Positions 39,470-49,922 of a stretch of DNA of 64,000 nt are shown in pieces. The notes under the pieces are model-generated. The model was not told where the DNA came from. It was given only the letters and a program-made list of their open reading frames with translations, and made no database searches. The stretch is from Antechinus flavipes. Taxonomy: Eukaryota. The stretch's first letter is position 1. Each line of letters begins with the position of its first letter. The position numbers and the translations under genes are program-made. The stretch covers positions 337,094,001 to 337,158,000 of the forward strand of contig NC_067398.1 of assembly GCF_016432865.1 (NCBI RefSeq), written 5' to 3'.

Positions 39470-39475
39470 AATAAA
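39470..39475 (+). terminator. Probable RHBDL1 poly(A) signal
   Basis: AATAAA about 700 nt after the stop codon. Confidence 0.55.
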
Positions 39476-40380
39476 TATTTTACACAGCAGCTGGCCAAGC
39501 AGTCTCAAACTAGAACGCCAGTTTCAGCTCCGGGCCTGCTCCCCCTCCCCACTGCTCAAGTGACCTTCTCTCTCCCTTCTTCCCCTTCTCCAGAGGCCTT
39601 GCTGTTGGGATAGAGACCAAGGCAGAATCCCCTGGGATTGCCTCCTGCTATTTCCAGCTTCTGGTCTTTCCCAACAACTTTTCAGGCCTGTTAAAGATTT
39701 CCCTCCTCACACCTCCGAATTTAGGCTCATGTGTGAAGGCAATTAAGAAGCTGTTTACACCTCCTGCCAGAGCAGTTAGCTAAGAACTGCTGAGCCTCGA
39801 GGGCCCACCCCATTCATTCCCTGAAATCCCAAGAGGCTCCACCAGCTTTGAAACACCTACAGCCTTCTCTCATTCCTAAATTCGGGAAAGCTCCAGTAGC
39901 AGACATTTTCTCTCTGAAAAACTAAGCTCCTTTTGATTTCCATTCCACCCCCACTCCCCCTCCCTGTGAGAATCACAGTTCTATGCAGTTCAGACTACTA
40001 ACTCTCTCTGAAAGGTGGCATGTTTCCTCATACCACACATAGGACAAGAGAAAACAAAGCCCTGGAAATGGTCAAGTCTAGGTTTATGCAGGAACTGAAC
40101 ACAACAGGGAGAAATTATTCAAACTGCAACAATAGTTTAAGTGGCTTTACCGGAAGTGATTCAGTGATGAAATTGGAGCTACACACTCTTAATTCCTAAT
40201 TCCTGGGTCAGTGCCAGCCTGGGAGAAGGTATCTAAGGAGTTGAGATCCAGATGAGGTTGGGATGGTAGGCAATTTTAATGGATGACAAAGGCTACCTTC
40301 TGCCCTGAGCCCCCCATGTAGAGGATAGGAGTCTGGCTGATGCATTTCTCTCTGAATGAAGTGTATACAGATGCCCAGGA

Positions 40381-43300
40381 TCAGTGAATGCTAGCTTTTC
40401 GTTTCTTGGACGGTCTAACATCTTCAGCATCTTCTCTGGCTTTGGGGGCTTCCCACAAAAAAGAGGGCAAGACTGTGGGACACAGTTTCTGAGCCACAGT
40501 CCAAGTCCAGAGGCACATTTCTATTTGATGAGGAGTCCATTCTGAGGAGGCATCAACTATGAGAAAAGCCCAAGGAGGGAAAATGAATCTGCAACTCTGA
40601 CCCTACTCAAACTAAAGCATCTTGCCAGAAGTTTGCTATCCCAGAGGCCTGAAGCTCCCTTACCCACTCTATTTAGGCCTAGTCATTCCCCAAACCCTTC
40701 TGGGAATAGAAGTAGTTAGTCAGATCATCAGAGACCGAGACTACTGTAGTATATGCATCTTTTCAGTTGGTAGCCCTTACCTTGGTTCAGCCTCTGAGCA
40801 CAGGCCCGGATCTTGTCCAAATACAGGACATAGTGTTTGAGAGTATACTGGAGCATAGGTAGGCCAGGGATAGCAGCCACTGCCTCATCTGCCATGAATG
40901 CTGTTGTCTCTGGGGCACCTGCTGTCAGAATTGCTGAGGAAAGCATGACTGGATTACGGGAGGGCAGGGAATCCAGGCCCATCCATACTTTCCACAGACC
41001 ATAGGGCCTTGAATGTTACCTCGTTTTAAGTAAGTTCCTCTAAACTCTTAGGTCACCACATTAGCTGGGGATGATCTGCTGCAGCAGAAGAAATCTCTTA
41101 GTAGTATGAGATCAAGTTGGGCCATTGGTTGGGAAAATGCTGAACTGACCTGATTAAAATGGTCTGGTTCTAGTGTTCTAAGGCAGCAGGTACGGGAGGG
41201 GATGCTCCCAAGTCTCAAGGAGAGCAGAGGAAGGGCTGAATGTTTTGTGCTCTGTCAGTAGTCATCATTTTAGGTCACACATACTTTCCCACCCCCTGAA
41301 CTGAATGAATGAAGCCTTCTCAGTTTGAGACAGATGTTAGAGATGGCATATCCCAGATTTCTCTTCCAGAATCTCCCCAAGAGACCAGGAGATCTGAGGC
41401 TCAGTTCTAGCCCAGAGGTTACAAATGTTCCCCAGCTGCTGGGACCCACCCTCAGCTCATCCCTTCTCTTCTTCCCTCACCAGAGGCAGTAGCTGGTCCC
41501 ACGGCTTTAAGCTGGCTCAGCTCTGTGATGGCAGCTTCCACATTAGGTAGGAGAGAGAAGGCTGCTGCTGTACATTGCTTTACCAACTCCTCTGGGTTAG
41601 TGGCCACCAAATTCTGGAGTCGTGGTCTGAATTTGCCCCTCTAAGTATGTGTAGGGAAGGACAGGAGGAGGAGGATAAGAACATAGAATTGAATTCTTAA
41701 TGATTCTCTCTGTTAGGCCCCTCACAACCTAGTTCAGGTCTCTGGTAACATATAATTACATATATTTTATATATATATAAAATAATTGGTAGAACTGACA
41801 TTCATGACTACAGGTTCTAGACCAATTTACATACTCCAATCTCTTCTCCTTAGAATCCTGAGTCTTCTTTCAAAGGAAACCATTCCTTGTCAGTTTCTAG
41901 GATACAACCCCTAACCTAAATTCAAGAAGAAATCCTGTCTTATAAACATGAAGTCATTGAAGTAAACAGAGCTCTTGGCAGGGAACAAATCTTGGGGTTT
42001 GACTTTACTAGAGTGGAAATTAGAAGACCTGAAACTTAATTGTAAATGTCATTTCCCCTTACTGGGCTTGTTTCTGCCTCTGTGAAATGAAGATTGGACC
42101 TAATTCCTAACACTGGTATTCTATTTCTGACACTGGGGGAGGGAGAGGGAGAAAATGAGACATACTTATGTTTCTAAAAACTAAAAAACAGTTAAGAGAT
42201 AGAGTAACTTACTTATCACTCAGTGGACACCAATCAATAAGCATTAAGTGCCTGCTAAATTTGAGGCACAGTGGGTACAAAGACAATCGAAATAGTTATT
42301 GCTCTTAAGGAACTTCCATTCCATTGAGGGAGACAACATATAAATATGTATGTATATATGTATATATAAAGAGAAGAAGAGAACAAAAGAGAGAGAAGAC
42401 ACAAATAAGATAATTTAATTTGTGGAGAAGGAACTAGCAATTTGGGAGATCAGAAAAGTTACTTGTTTAGTCAGTAGAGAGGCCATGTCAGGTCATCCTT
42501 CTGGATGGACCTAAGTTTCTTTTGTGCCTTCTCTGTTCAGCATGGATTTGTGCCCCTCTCTAAAGATATCACCTTATTCAGATAAAGTAAAAGCTTACCG
42601 TCAGCTTCCATTCCATCAGCTTCACCAATTCATCTCTTGTGAGGTATTTGTCCTTTCTCTCTCTTATAGAAACTGGTAGCTCCTCCTGATACCTGAAACA
42701 GGCATCCACTGACAAATCGAGTGGTATATGTATATGTTGTGGTACCAGGGATGGGTCAGTGAAATTCACTATTTCATTGGGACAACTTTTCCCAAAGTCT
42801 AGCCCTTAGATCTCAGGGTAGAACATTAAGCTGCTTTAGAGCAAGGTTCCAGACAATACTTTACCTGGATAGAGTTCCTGTGACTGAACCTCTTAGGGAC
42901 TAGCATGATGTGTCCTCCCCTTTTTGAACCCTGGAACTAGATTCTCCTAAGGTCTAGGTTGCCAGGGAGAATTGAAGAGATCCATCCAAAAGAAAACCGG
43001 GATAAAGATTGAGAGGGCATCTTGCCACCTGTTCTTATTTCCCATCTTTACCTCCACCCTCCCTCAAGAAATTCATTCAGCTTTGGGACTCTCCTTGGAT
43101 TTGAACCTGGTTGCTCCTGGTTGGTGAGCACAAACAAGCACACCAATGCCCACCCACGTGTCCCTCCACATTTGGCTCGGGCACTGCCCCACGGGTTCCT
43201 GGGACTTCTAGGACCACAACTTCCTTTTCCTATCAATCAATCAAACGATATTTACCAAACGCTGGCTGCGTGCCAGGCACCGCGCTAGGATACAATTGAT

Positions 43301-43578
43301 CGGAGGCAAGAACAGTCTCACTGGTGTTTGCATCTCCAGAGCCCGCCACGGGGCGGTTAAACCAGACGCTCCCGCCTCCTCTTCCCCTCCTCCCCCAGGC
43401 TCCCCAGGAGAATCAGGGACGATCCGGGCTCCGGTGGAAGCTCGGCTCACCATTCATCCAAAGCGACAAGCTTGCGGGTCTTGCCCTCTCTGGCTCTGAC
43501 CACGTCCTTGTAGCAGCCCAGCACGGCCGTCCAGCACTGGGGGTCGTCACAGTCATAAAGACCCCCGCTCAGGCCCAT
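40381..43578 (-). CDS. Unnamed Amun-like protein with a helix-hairpin-helix (HhH-GPD glycosylase-like) fold, 236 aa, intact
   Basis: Exons (minus strand) 43451-43578, 42599-42692, 41481-41640, 40781-40933, 40381-40556. Total 711 nt, all GT-AG and in phase, start context GCTATGG. Protein: MGLSGGLYDCDDPQCWTAVLGCYKDVVRAREGKTRKLVALDEWYQEELPVSIRERKDKYLTRDELVKLMEWKLTRGKFRPRLQNLVATNPEELVKQCTAAAFSLLPNVEAAITELSQLKAVGPATASAILTAGAPETTAFMADEAVAAIPGLPMLQYTLKHYVLYLDKIRACAQRLNQVDASSEWTPHQIEMCLWTWTVAQKLCPTVLPSFLWEAPKAREDAEDVRPSKKRKASIH. Motifs ELVKLMEWKLTRGKFRPRL, VGPATASAIL and FMADEA match my recollection of the Amun / zgc:112496 family. The gene model is more certain than the family name. Confidence 0.88.
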
Positions 43579-43579
43579 A

Positions 43580-44475
43580 GCTCCGGCCCCCAAGATAGGA
43601 ATTTCGGTGCCTCCTGAATATTGGGGGCGTCTTCAAAATGGGCAACGCCTTCCGGGCCCCTGAGGAAGGAAACGCCTAGGGCCGTAACGGGGAAGGGAAT
43701 GGAAAGGTTAGGGGGATAAGGAACGGAGTTGCCGCTTCCTCAGGTAAGGATCGCCGTCTCCGCCCGCGCACGCGCACGCACACGCACAGATATGCTGCGC
43801 ACGCACAGATATGTTCCTCTACAGTGCACCTTTTCTCCGCCCCTCTAATTACTCAGGTCCAATCCCACTCCTCGATTAAACAGACCCGCCCTAGACCCGC
43901 CCCTTCAAGCCGCGCCCTGCCTCGGTCACACCTTCCACACCGCGCACGCGTAAAAACACGCATGTTCCCCTCCTAGGGTCTACTCTTCTCATCCTCCTTT
44001 CTTGGCGGGCTCAATCGAAGTCCTCGGCCCCAGCCCTTCTGTGTCTGTGCCTAGACCACCGATCCTCGTACGCACTGACAAACCCCGTTTACTTAGGGCC
44101 TAACTCGACTAGCCCCGCCCCCTCGTGCTCGTTCGCTGTTACATCTCTGGGCTCGACTTTTGCCCCGCCCCCAAGCTTCTCGATTTTTTGGCGTCCTTCT
44201 TCACGGGCTCATCCCTTCTCTTCCGGCTCCGCCCCCCTCGCTCTACTGGGCCGGGACTTCCGGTTGGGTGACGGCGCTGGGTCTCCGCAGGGAAGAATTC
44301 GGGGCATCTTGGGACTGGAGCTCGGGGGTCCGAGCTGAGTCGCTGGCGCTTTTTGTCGGCAGCGCCCGGGGCGAGGGCGGGCCCAGACCTGAGTTCAGCG
44401 GCTGGGGCCGGGGGCCGTGATCAGATCACGGGGCCGGGCCGGGGTAGGGGCCGAGGCCGGGGCCGGGCCGGAGCC
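43580..44475. promoter_or_regulatory. Bidirectional CpG-island promoter shared by STUB1 and the Amun-like gene
   Basis: The ATGs at 43578 (-) and 44476 (+) are about 0.9 kb apart. Contains NRF1-like GCGCACGCGC (43766-43775), ETS ACTTCCGG (44256-44263) and several CCCCGCCC GC boxes. Confidence 0.75.

Positions 44476-49922
<5,447 letters not shown>

Follow-up and report, generated by a model that had tools for sequence, protein, structure and literature searches.

A minus-strand gene in the 64,000-nucleotide stretch of Antechinus flavipes DNA analysed here (the window, which contains no N) was confirmed as real, expressed and conserved. It is very probably a functional protein-coding gene, the orthologue in a dasyurid marsupial of the zgc:112496 gene of vertebrates and the Amun gene of arthropods, and its product is modelled with the helix-hairpin-helix (HhH)-GPD fold. 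A script-rebuilt model runs from 43578 to 40381 in five exons with four GT-AG introns and matching phases, and the joined coding sequence of 711 nt encodes 236 aa and closes with TGA at 40383-40381. Around the ATG, the context GAGCTATGG carries G at both -3 and +4; upstream, an in-frame stop lies 19 codons away and no in-frame ATG occurs. The rebuild reproduced what an earlier note on this DNA had described, namely five GT-AG exons in matching phases, 236 aa and a strong start context. The features of the locus are as follows.

43451..43578, minus strand: exon 1, coding part (128 nt; ATG at 43578-43576; GT donor at 43450-43449)
42599..42692, minus strand: exon 2 (94 nt; AG acceptor and GT donor; codes YQEELP...LTRDELVKLMEWKLT)
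41481..41640, minus strand: exon 3 (160 nt; RGKFRPRL motif and helix-hairpin-helix LKAVGPATAS)
40781..40933, minus strand: exon 4 (153 nt; codes AILTAGAPETTAFMADEA, which holds the candidate catalytic Asp143, through ...RLNQ)
40381..40556, minus strand: exon 5, coding part (176 nt; codes VDASSEWTPHQIEMCLW and a basic C-terminal tail, RPSKKRKASIH)
40257..40380, minus strand: proximal 3' UTR (ATTAAA signal at 40280-40275; contigs reaching beyond 40301)
43200..45000, no strand: CpG island common to this gene and STUB1 (base-composition scan)

The product of exon 1 consists of N-terminal helices ending in ...LVALDEW, and the exon gave gapless blastn matches over nt 1-128 in Petaurus and Dromiciops and over nt 1-122 in Macrotis and Notamacropus. 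When single exons were run against Pfam, the sole result was a weak HHH match with exon 3 (E 0.0088). As a peptide, exon 3 matched 217 cluster representatives at E ≤ 0.001 in a search of 1.84 billion proteins; alone as an atlas query it gave no usable result. The full protein carries the motifs LTRDELVKLMEWKLTRGKFRPRL, LKAVGPATASAIL, FMADEA and WTPHQIEMCLW, so that each of the family motifs quoted in the earlier note was found, and the tail in exon 5 is, judging from its residues, likely a nuclear localisation signal. Because the protein is 94.5% identical from end to end (1-236) to the annotated 236-aa Sminthopsis protein LOC141549818, and because of the 217 matches to exon 3, the gene model lies far beyond chance. 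A 231-aa variant using an AG acceptor at 40541, 15 nt further downstream, was ruled out by the family alignment and by the RNA joint 40556>40781.

Transcription was examined in assembled, unstranded RNA contigs from a closely related sister species (4 runs from at least two studies). These contigs were spliced exactly at all four predicted junctions. Joints were observed at 40556>40781 (4 runs), 40933>41481 and 41640>42599 (4 runs), and contig coverage of exon 2 spanned exactly 42599-42693. For the joint to exon 1, a 27-nt loose contig end past 42693 fits 43452-43478 with 3 mismatches, the next best place having 12. Some contigs had longer 3' ends, at ~40147 (run X8) and ~39576 (run X1, calculated from contig size); since the contigs are unstranded, the extent of this distal 3' UTR is uncertain.

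The gene lies head-to-head with STUB1, whose ATG is at 44476 on the plus strand, placing the start codons 898 bp apart, and the exon-1 peptide of STUB1 falls within an ORF at 44353-44844. Spanning both start codons, 43200-44999 has a GC content of 55-77% and a CpG observed/expected ratio of 0.6-1.1, compared with 0.1-0.24 in the flanks, and the island is likely a bidirectional promoter. On its other side the gene is tail-to-tail (convergent) with RHBDL1, the domains of which were detected in the window. The position between RHBDL1 and STUB1 claimed earlier was thus borne out, and the order is repeated in other vertebrates. Annotations of the bilby, sugar glider, monito del monte, wallaby, cattle (the sole placental locus fetched for synteny), green turtle and Xenopus loci all show the head-to-head pairing with STUB1, and a gene with a Rhomboid domain follows downstream at every locus fetched (four marsupials, cattle, Xenopus and platypus) but the turtle's. 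In platypus, the head-to-head neighbour of the orthologue has no Pfam hit on record.

We compared the coding sequence with those of four other marsupials (Macrotis, Petaurus, Dromiciops and Notamacropus), in each of which the 711-nt CDS is intact, its exons are identical in length and its introns are GT-AG. Pairwise dN/dS was 0.16-0.30 (core, 0.10-0.21; Fisher p 6e-9 to 3e-18), well short of the value of about 1 that the earlier note had named as speaking against a functional gene. The gene is under purifying selection in marsupials. Degenerate-looking loci in some placentals, and the name STUB1-DT, a divergent-transcript name that NCBI gives to the hedgehog gene, might suggest that the ORF is decaying or non-functional, a transcribed relic akin to a divergent lncRNA of STUB1. 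Against this stand an ORF that is intact with unchanged exon lengths in all five marsupials compared, the dN/dS values (p < 1e-8 throughout) and the exact splicing in RNA contigs, which leave such a relic only a very slight probability. For marsupials, a pseudogene is ruled out by the dN/dS values and the intact ORF.

The gene is not new: NCBI and Ensembl annotate it as an uncharacterised LOC in related species, including Sarcophilus, Sminthopsis, Vombatus, Dromiciops, Macrotis, Petaurus, Notamacropus and both monotremes. The earlier note was therefore right that the gene has no proper name, but it is already on record in several marsupials. Apparently intact placental orthologues are annotated in cattle (where the orthologue occupies the equivalent genomic position), pig, deer, hippo, whales, camelids and horse, and further in bats, shrew, manatee, dugong and beaver. 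For Pongo, Pygathrix, elephant and black rhino the predicted proteins appear degenerate, and the two primate predictions have in common a break immediately past the GVGP hairpin. As the note had expected, no human or mouse protein was among the family hits in the protein collections searched; this absence, together with the naming of the hedgehog gene, leads us to infer loss in human and mouse. The earlier note's proposal of retention in marsupials and loss in some placentals was supported, although retention is not specific to marsupials, as many placentals keep the gene. Given the existing LOC annotation and the many placentals that retain an orthologue, the novelty of the gene is lower. The name STUB1-DT occurs in one paper, which by its title is a cancer expression survey.

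Tests of family membership and structure were run on the Sminthopsis protein (P0152) as a proxy for the window protein. By BLASTP it matched a tick 'protein amun' (48% over 199 aa; E 4e-62), a mayfly 'Amun' (41%; E 4e-51) and a 544-aa drosophilid homologue (Scaptodrosophila P0415; 47%; E 4e-45), and fish and shark proteins named zgc:112496 were recovered at E values of about 1e-63 to 1e-68. These matches uphold the assignment to the Amun / zgc:112496 family, with the link to Drosophila Amun (CG2446) running through NCBI-named arthropod orthologues and the drosophilid homologue. The window protein contains all of the signature blocks WKLxRGKFRPRL, LKxVGPATAS, FMADE and WTPH..E..LW, which across an alignment of 79 members are either invariant or conserved to 90% or more. 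The family extends to fungi and plants, and the pair D143-E144 is kept in animals as far apart as cnidarians, molluscs, echinoderms and marsupials.

An AF2 model of the same Sminthopsis protein (pLDDT 91.1, pTM 0.85) aligned in VIA-align with HhH-GPD enzymes, in line with the glycosylase fold proposed earlier. The best matches were MjOgg 3knt (Z 10.4; 162 aa, rmsd 3.8), TmOgg 3n0u (Z 10.0) and SsOgg 3fhg (Z 9.2), although the tool itself cautions that for helical proteins a Z of ~10 does not settle the matter. Z was at least 5 for 147 of the 999 chains compared, and all 50 entries listed were HhH-GPD enzymes. The top Foldseek rows against the PDB belonged to the same superfamily with weak E values (best 0.09). 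Since none reached E ≤ 0.001, the fold call rests on the VIA-align Z-scores and the uniform identity of the matches. As modelled, the protein would be all-helical and adopt the HhH-GPD DNA-glycosylase fold, in a form nearest to that of the compact Ogg2-type enzymes. Neither the profile nor the core retrieved a significant relative when the PDB was searched by sequence, and every Pfam match of the marsupial protein fell below its gathering score. PF21790 (OGG) scored 18.1 bits against a cut-off of 27 (E 0.0023; residues 76-194), and HHH (PF00633) scored 15.6-17.8 bits in marsupial and bovine proteins, under its 24-bit cut-off, and 24.6 in Xenopus, just over it. PF00730 (HhH-GPD) gave no match at E ≤ 1 in six family members.

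Within the 79-member alignment, K72, G122, A124, T125, A126, F140 and Y157 are conserved in every member, D143 in 75 and E144 in 77. The monofunctional MutYX 8uuc has a GIGPATA hairpin, with which the HhH aligns. A Gly/Pro loop followed by an Asp ~20 residues past the hairpin is the signature of EndoIII, MutY and OGG1; here G133 and P135 precede D143, which lies 19 residues past A124 and is, by this motif spacing, the candidate equivalent of the catalytic Asp. The known hairpin pattern that carries a Lys is GVGxKTA, and it is this catalytic Lys in the hairpin that makes the Ogg2 enzymes glycosylase/lyases. In a register taken from this pattern and the MutYX hairpin alignment, the lyase-Lys position is the invariant Ala124.

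From these features we propose a nuclear, monofunctional mechanism of N-glycosidic bond hydrolysis, to which, taken jointly, we assign slightly less than an even chance. The basic KKRK tail would take the protein into the nucleus, where the helix-hairpin-helix at L115-L130 would bind the DNA backbone. Lying 19 residues past the hairpin, the nearly invariant Asp143 might then assist in hydrolysing the N-glycosidic bond, either as general base or as stabiliser, and the family-specific WKLxRGKFRPRL block may shape the substrate pocket. With the invariant Ala124 in place of the lyase Lys, the protein would be a monofunctional glycosylase devoid of AP-lyase activity. Text searches of the literature found no enzymatic activity reported for any family member. 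Fly Amun is reportedly a nuclear regulator and a modifier of the Notch pathway affecting sensory organs, a phenotype that fits a role in transcription or chromatin as well as one in repair.

Two other functions were weighed against this mechanism. The protein could be a non-catalytic nuclear regulator that binds DNA or lesions, using the glycosylase fold only for DNA or chromatin binding in a transcription or chromatin role, in the manner of S. pombe Mag2, which binds abasic sites but excises no base. We consider this unlikely, though a serious candidate: the fold comparison matched Mag2 structures (4hsb, Z 6.9; 4b21, Z 6.7), the catalytic Lys is missing with A124 invariant, fly Amun is described as a nuclear Notch-pathway regulator, and repeated placental loss suggests that the role is dispensable and not part of core repair. 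However, the deep conservation of D143-E144 and of the pocket-like residues K72, F140 and Y157 is more typical of an active site than of a surface for binding. QNG1 (DUF2419), a queuosine-salvage enzyme that re-uses the HhH-GPD fold, provides the model for a hydrolase whose substrate would be RNA or a free modified nucleoside or nucleotide instead of DNA. QNG1 structures were indeed among the matches (7ugk, Z 6.1; 7u07, Z 6.0; 7ulc and 7u07 in Foldseek), and the WKLxRGKFRPRL block has no mappable counterpart in DNA glycosylases. The protein nevertheless has a canonical HhH of the kind that binds the DNA backbone and a conserved KKRK nuclear tail, and the DNA-bound Ogg2 match is clearly better (Z 10.4 versus ~6), making a substrate other than DNA improbable.

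The presence of the Asp and the absence of the superfamily Lys narrow the hypothesis to monofunctional excision or lesion binding. What emerges is a well-conserved glycosylase-fold protein extending from fungi and plants to mammals, with a putative chemistry, and belonging to a family that has probably been neglected because it is absent from the human and mouse protein sets. As livestock, bats, marsupials, frogs and fish retain the gene, in a constant place next to STUB1, model systems exist, and placentals in which it has repeatedly decayed can serve as natural knock-outs to compare. A broader and rather unlikely proposal is that the Amun/zgc:112496 proteins are overlooked, eukaryote-wide active monofunctional glycosylases for DNA or modified bases, missed because human and mouse lost the gene, with the human divergent transcript STUB1-DT as its transcribed relic. 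If so, the independent decays in primates, elephant and rhinoceros would reflect repeated relaxation of the need to handle the lesion or base modification concerned.

Compared with known systems, the vertebrate zgc:112496 orthologues (Sminthopsis LOC141549818, Sarcophilus LOC105749541, platypus LOC103167439, Bos and Xenopus LOC100145131) show no substantive difference from the window gene and are the same gene in other species, with a similar length of ~230-240 aa. Beyond the full-length identity to Sminthopsis, the window protein is 96% identical to that of Sarcophilus over exons 2-5, 81-89% to other marsupials (bilby and wallaby 81%, wombat 89%), ~63% to platypus and turtle and ~56% to placentals. 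In the RefSeq models for Sarcophilus the first exon is wrong, being intron read-through, and those of Dromiciops and Notamacropus carry spurious extensions. Arthropod Amun proteins share an N-terminal domain of ~200 aa (41-48% identical; E 4e-45 to 4e-62) with the blocks WYQ(E/N)ELP, WK..RGKF.P.L, LK.VG..(T/M)AS and FMADE, but have long additional C-terminal tails, for totals of 351-544 aa. The two insect proteins compared have the hairpin GVGTTMAS and the block RGKFYPQL, and the tick protein has RGKYRPQL and GIGPATAS.

Among known glycosylases, the best structural matches were of the Ogg2 type (M. jannaschii 3knt, T. maritima Tm1821 3n0u and S. solfataricus 3fhg; 161-167 residues aligned), which share the compact two-lobed, all-helical HhH-GPD architecture with neither an Fe-S cluster nor an extra beta domain. 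Identity is just 11-14%, however, and the catalytic hairpin Lys of Ogg2 is replaced by Ala124. With this Lys absent and PF21790 below its cut-off, the Amun-like protein is not a member of the Ogg2 family. In the monofunctional HhH-GPD glycosylases (MutY/MutYX, MagIII, AlkA and Mag1), the superfamily fold is held in common (Z 5.6-7.4), but there is no detectable sequence relation beyond the hairpin, and the Amun-like protein differs in having no Fe-S cluster motif and in its family-specific substrate-pocket residues. Like the Amun-like protein, these enzymes have a hairpin without the Lys and an Asp after a Gly/Pro-containing loop, and the clusterless MutYX 8uuc has the identical GPATA string.

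We found that the minus-strand Amun-like gene between RHBDL1 and STUB1 is real, and that its interpretation in the earlier note was largely right. The rebuilt gene model is as follows:

43578-43451, minus strand, exon 1 (coding part)
42692-42599, minus strand, exon 2
41640-41481, minus strand, exon 3
40933-40781, minus strand, exon 4
40556-40381, minus strand, exon 5 (coding part)

As had been read from the sequence alone, every donor is GT, every acceptor is AG and the exon phases are compatible, giving a spliced CDS of 711 nt that encodes 236 aa and ends in TGA at 40383-40381. The start codon, previously called strong, has G at both -3 and +4. The first in-frame stop 5' of it is 19 codons away, and a scan of the 5' sequence found no in-frame ATG upstream. 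The window sequence contains no N. A second AG (40541-40556) lies 15 nt past the used exon-5 acceptor, and its use would remove five residues, VDASS, in frame. This 231-aa form was ruled out by RNA use of 40556 and by homologue alignment, since the ~7 residues separating the LN and W positions in homologues fit the 236-aa form only; the alternative AG (40541) was unused in all four RNA runs.

At least two studies of a close relative supplied these four runs, which were aligned to 40300-43800. The assembled, unstranded contigs from this sister species were about 96-97% identical to the window in exons, and joined 40556 to 40781, 40933 to 41481 and 41640 to 42599, reading CT..AC on the plus strand and hence GT..AG on the minus strand. 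Moreover, a 27-nt loose contig end beyond 42693 fits 43452-43478 with 3 mismatches (12 at the next best place). The three joints and this loose end together indicate that all four introns are removed as predicted. An unspliced contig across intron 3 (40905-41510) was also present in all four runs, at a depth of 5-25 compared with up to 465 in spliced exons, and could stem from a retained intron, from pre-mRNA or from carried-over DNA. Some RNA contigs extend past a proximal ATTAAA at 40280-40275. The 3' ends of the gene and RHBDL1 converge within 39470-40380, with a plus-strand AATAAA at 39470; one unstranded contig from RNA run X1 starts in exon 5 and, by arithmetic from its length, ends near 39576, so the 3' UTRs of the two genes may come close together or overlap.

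Homologous exons of four other marsupials aligned to the window exons without gaps, with two exon-1 and one exon-4 and exon-5 alignments ending 2-6 nt short of the exon end in blastn. Taken at the window's exon lengths, all four CDSs were intact at 711 nt with GT-AG introns. Pairwise Nei-Gojobori dN/dS was 0.16-0.30 for the full CDS and 0.10-0.21 within residues 36-205, and the excess of synonymous changes was significant (Fisher p 6e-9 to 3e-18).

The exon 3 peptide alone recovered 217 cluster representatives at E <= 0.001 in a search of 1.84 billion proteins. Identity to the window protein was 94.5% end to end for Sminthopsis LOC141549818 (236 aa; P0152 below), 96% across exons 2-5 for Sarcophilus LOC105749541, 81-89% for other marsupials, about 63% for platypus and turtle, and about 56% for placentals. 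These identities place the window in a dasyurid marsupial. Some public marsupial models are imperfect: in Sarcophilus (P0001/P0151) intron read-through upstream of exon 2 replaces the true exon 1, the Dromiciops model (P0154) has a 119-aa N-terminal extension and the Notamacropus model (P0157) a 20-aa insertion; a clean five-exon, 236-aa version exists in the latter two loci (L003 and L005, respectively). Named vertebrate matches came from marsupials, both monotremes, turtles, crocodilians, lepidosaurs, amphibians, ray-finned fish, sharks and many placentals, the latter including cattle, musk deer, reindeer, deer, hippo, pig, warthog, camelids and whales, as well as horses, bats, shrew, hedgehog, manatee, dugong and beaver. 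Distant members were found in coral, hydroid, oyster, crinoid, sea urchin, ticks, spiders and insects, and the family extends to fungi and plants as well as to ichthyosporeans and a choanoflagellate. The matches included no protein from birds, mouse, rat or human. Birds were absent among the best matches even though turtles and crocodilians reach E about 1e-76 to 1e-79, which may reflect loss in birds or gaps in bird assemblies.

Membership of the Amun / zgc:112496 family, put forward in the earlier note, was borne out. Ray-finned fish and shark matches carry the name zgc:112496, and P0152 matched a tick "protein amun" (48% identity over 199 aa, E 4e-62), a mayfly "Amun" (41%, E 4e-51) and a drosophilid 544-aa homologue (47%, E 4e-45), so that the link runs via these proteins and not D. 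melanogaster Amun itself. For the 2009 study of fly Amun, known here by its title and a preprint's summary, that summary describes a nuclear regulator in the Notch pathway that carries a glycosylase domain.

The neighbouring genes in the window are:

35.6 kb, plus strand, RHBDL1 EF-hand, upstream piece
37.6-38.7 kb, plus strand, RHBDL1 Rhomboid domains, upstream pieces
44476 (exon-1 peptide start) to 49.9 kb (U-box end), plus strand, STUB1, downstream, from peptide matches
60.7 kb, minus strand, WD40 gene

The start codons of the gene and STUB1 lie 898 bp apart within one CpG island (43.2-45.0 kb; GC 55-77%, CpG observed/expected 0.6-1.1), which suggests a bidirectional promoter. The shared region contains a (GCAC/GCGC)-type simple repeat at 43770-43795, and intron 2 contains TA-rich microsatellites at 41755-41786 and 42335-42380, which the RNA alignment passed over. 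STUB1 exon 1 encodes a Gly-rich stretch before the first TPR (44476-44660), located where the GC content of the island peaks (76-77%). Annotations of bilby, sugar glider, monito del monte, wallaby, cattle and Xenopus place STUB1 head-to-head and RHBDL1 tail-to-tail with the gene. In platypus a Rhomboid gene lies downstream of the orthologue, the head-to-head neighbour being a 329-aa gene with no recorded Pfam hit, and the green turtle locus has the STUB1 pairing. Based on these loci, the arrangement is common to tetrapods, from frog to mammals.

The proposal that the gene was kept in marsupials and lost in some placentals held with a correction: the gene is intact in five marsupials and its predictions look degenerate in some placentals, and it is also widely retained in placentals. 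Loss was read here from gene predictions rather than genomic lesions. The hairpin is lost in Pygathrix (P0292) and disrupted in black rhino (Diceros, P0284/P0304), the Pongo protein (P0070) is scrambled from hairpin GVGP onward, and in elephant (Loxodonta, P0285) the RGRFRPRL block is gone and His replaces the Asp. In contrast, manatee, dugong and horse proteins look intact, and this pattern, with two catarrhine primates among the degenerate cases, suggests several independent decays. The hedgehog model (Erinaceus, P0279) is without the RGRFRPRLQQ block, perhaps through an error in the model; NCBI lists this gene as STUB1-DT, a divergent-transcript name. Given the wide placental retention and an existing annotation as an unnamed LOC in sister species, the window does not bring a new gene to light.

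An AlphaFold2 model of P0152, made with a 79-sequence alignment, was all-helical (pLDDT 91.1, pTM 0.85). In the proposed fold comparison, the top Foldseek rows were HhH-GPD superfamily glycosylases, none with a significant E-value. In VIA-align the model scored Z 10.4 against M. jannaschii Ogg over 162 aa at rmsd 3.8, Z 10.0 against T. maritima Tm1821 and Z 9.2 against S. solfataricus Ogg. These three exceeded EndoIII, MutY, OGG1, NTHL1, MagIII, Mag1/Mag2, AlkA, AGOG, QNG1 and ROS1 by two to three Z units, and Fic proteins appeared only below Z 4.3. Pfam gave sub-threshold matches to PF21790 OGG (E 0.0023, residues 76-194), HHH and HHH_5, and no match to PF00730. A biochemical role of the family as a glycosylase is putative. 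The protein ends in a basic tail containing KKRK, which suggests import into the nucleus.

K72, F140 and Y157 do not vary across the 79-member alignment, and the block WKLxRGKFRPRL scarcely does. The hairpin, LKAVGPATASAIL, includes Ala124, and D143 (75/79 members) lies 19 residues past it, after G133 and P135, and is followed by E144 (77/79). In the GVGxKTA pattern of EndoIII, OGG1 and the compact Ogg2 enzymes, the Lys is the lyase nucleophile, whereas Ala124 occupies this position in all 79 family members. In clusterless MutYX, a monofunctional glycosylase (structure 8uuc), a GPATA string aligns with the identical GPATA of the family hairpin. Judged from these residues, the protein would fit a monofunctional glycosylase or lesion binder rather than a glycosylase/lyase.
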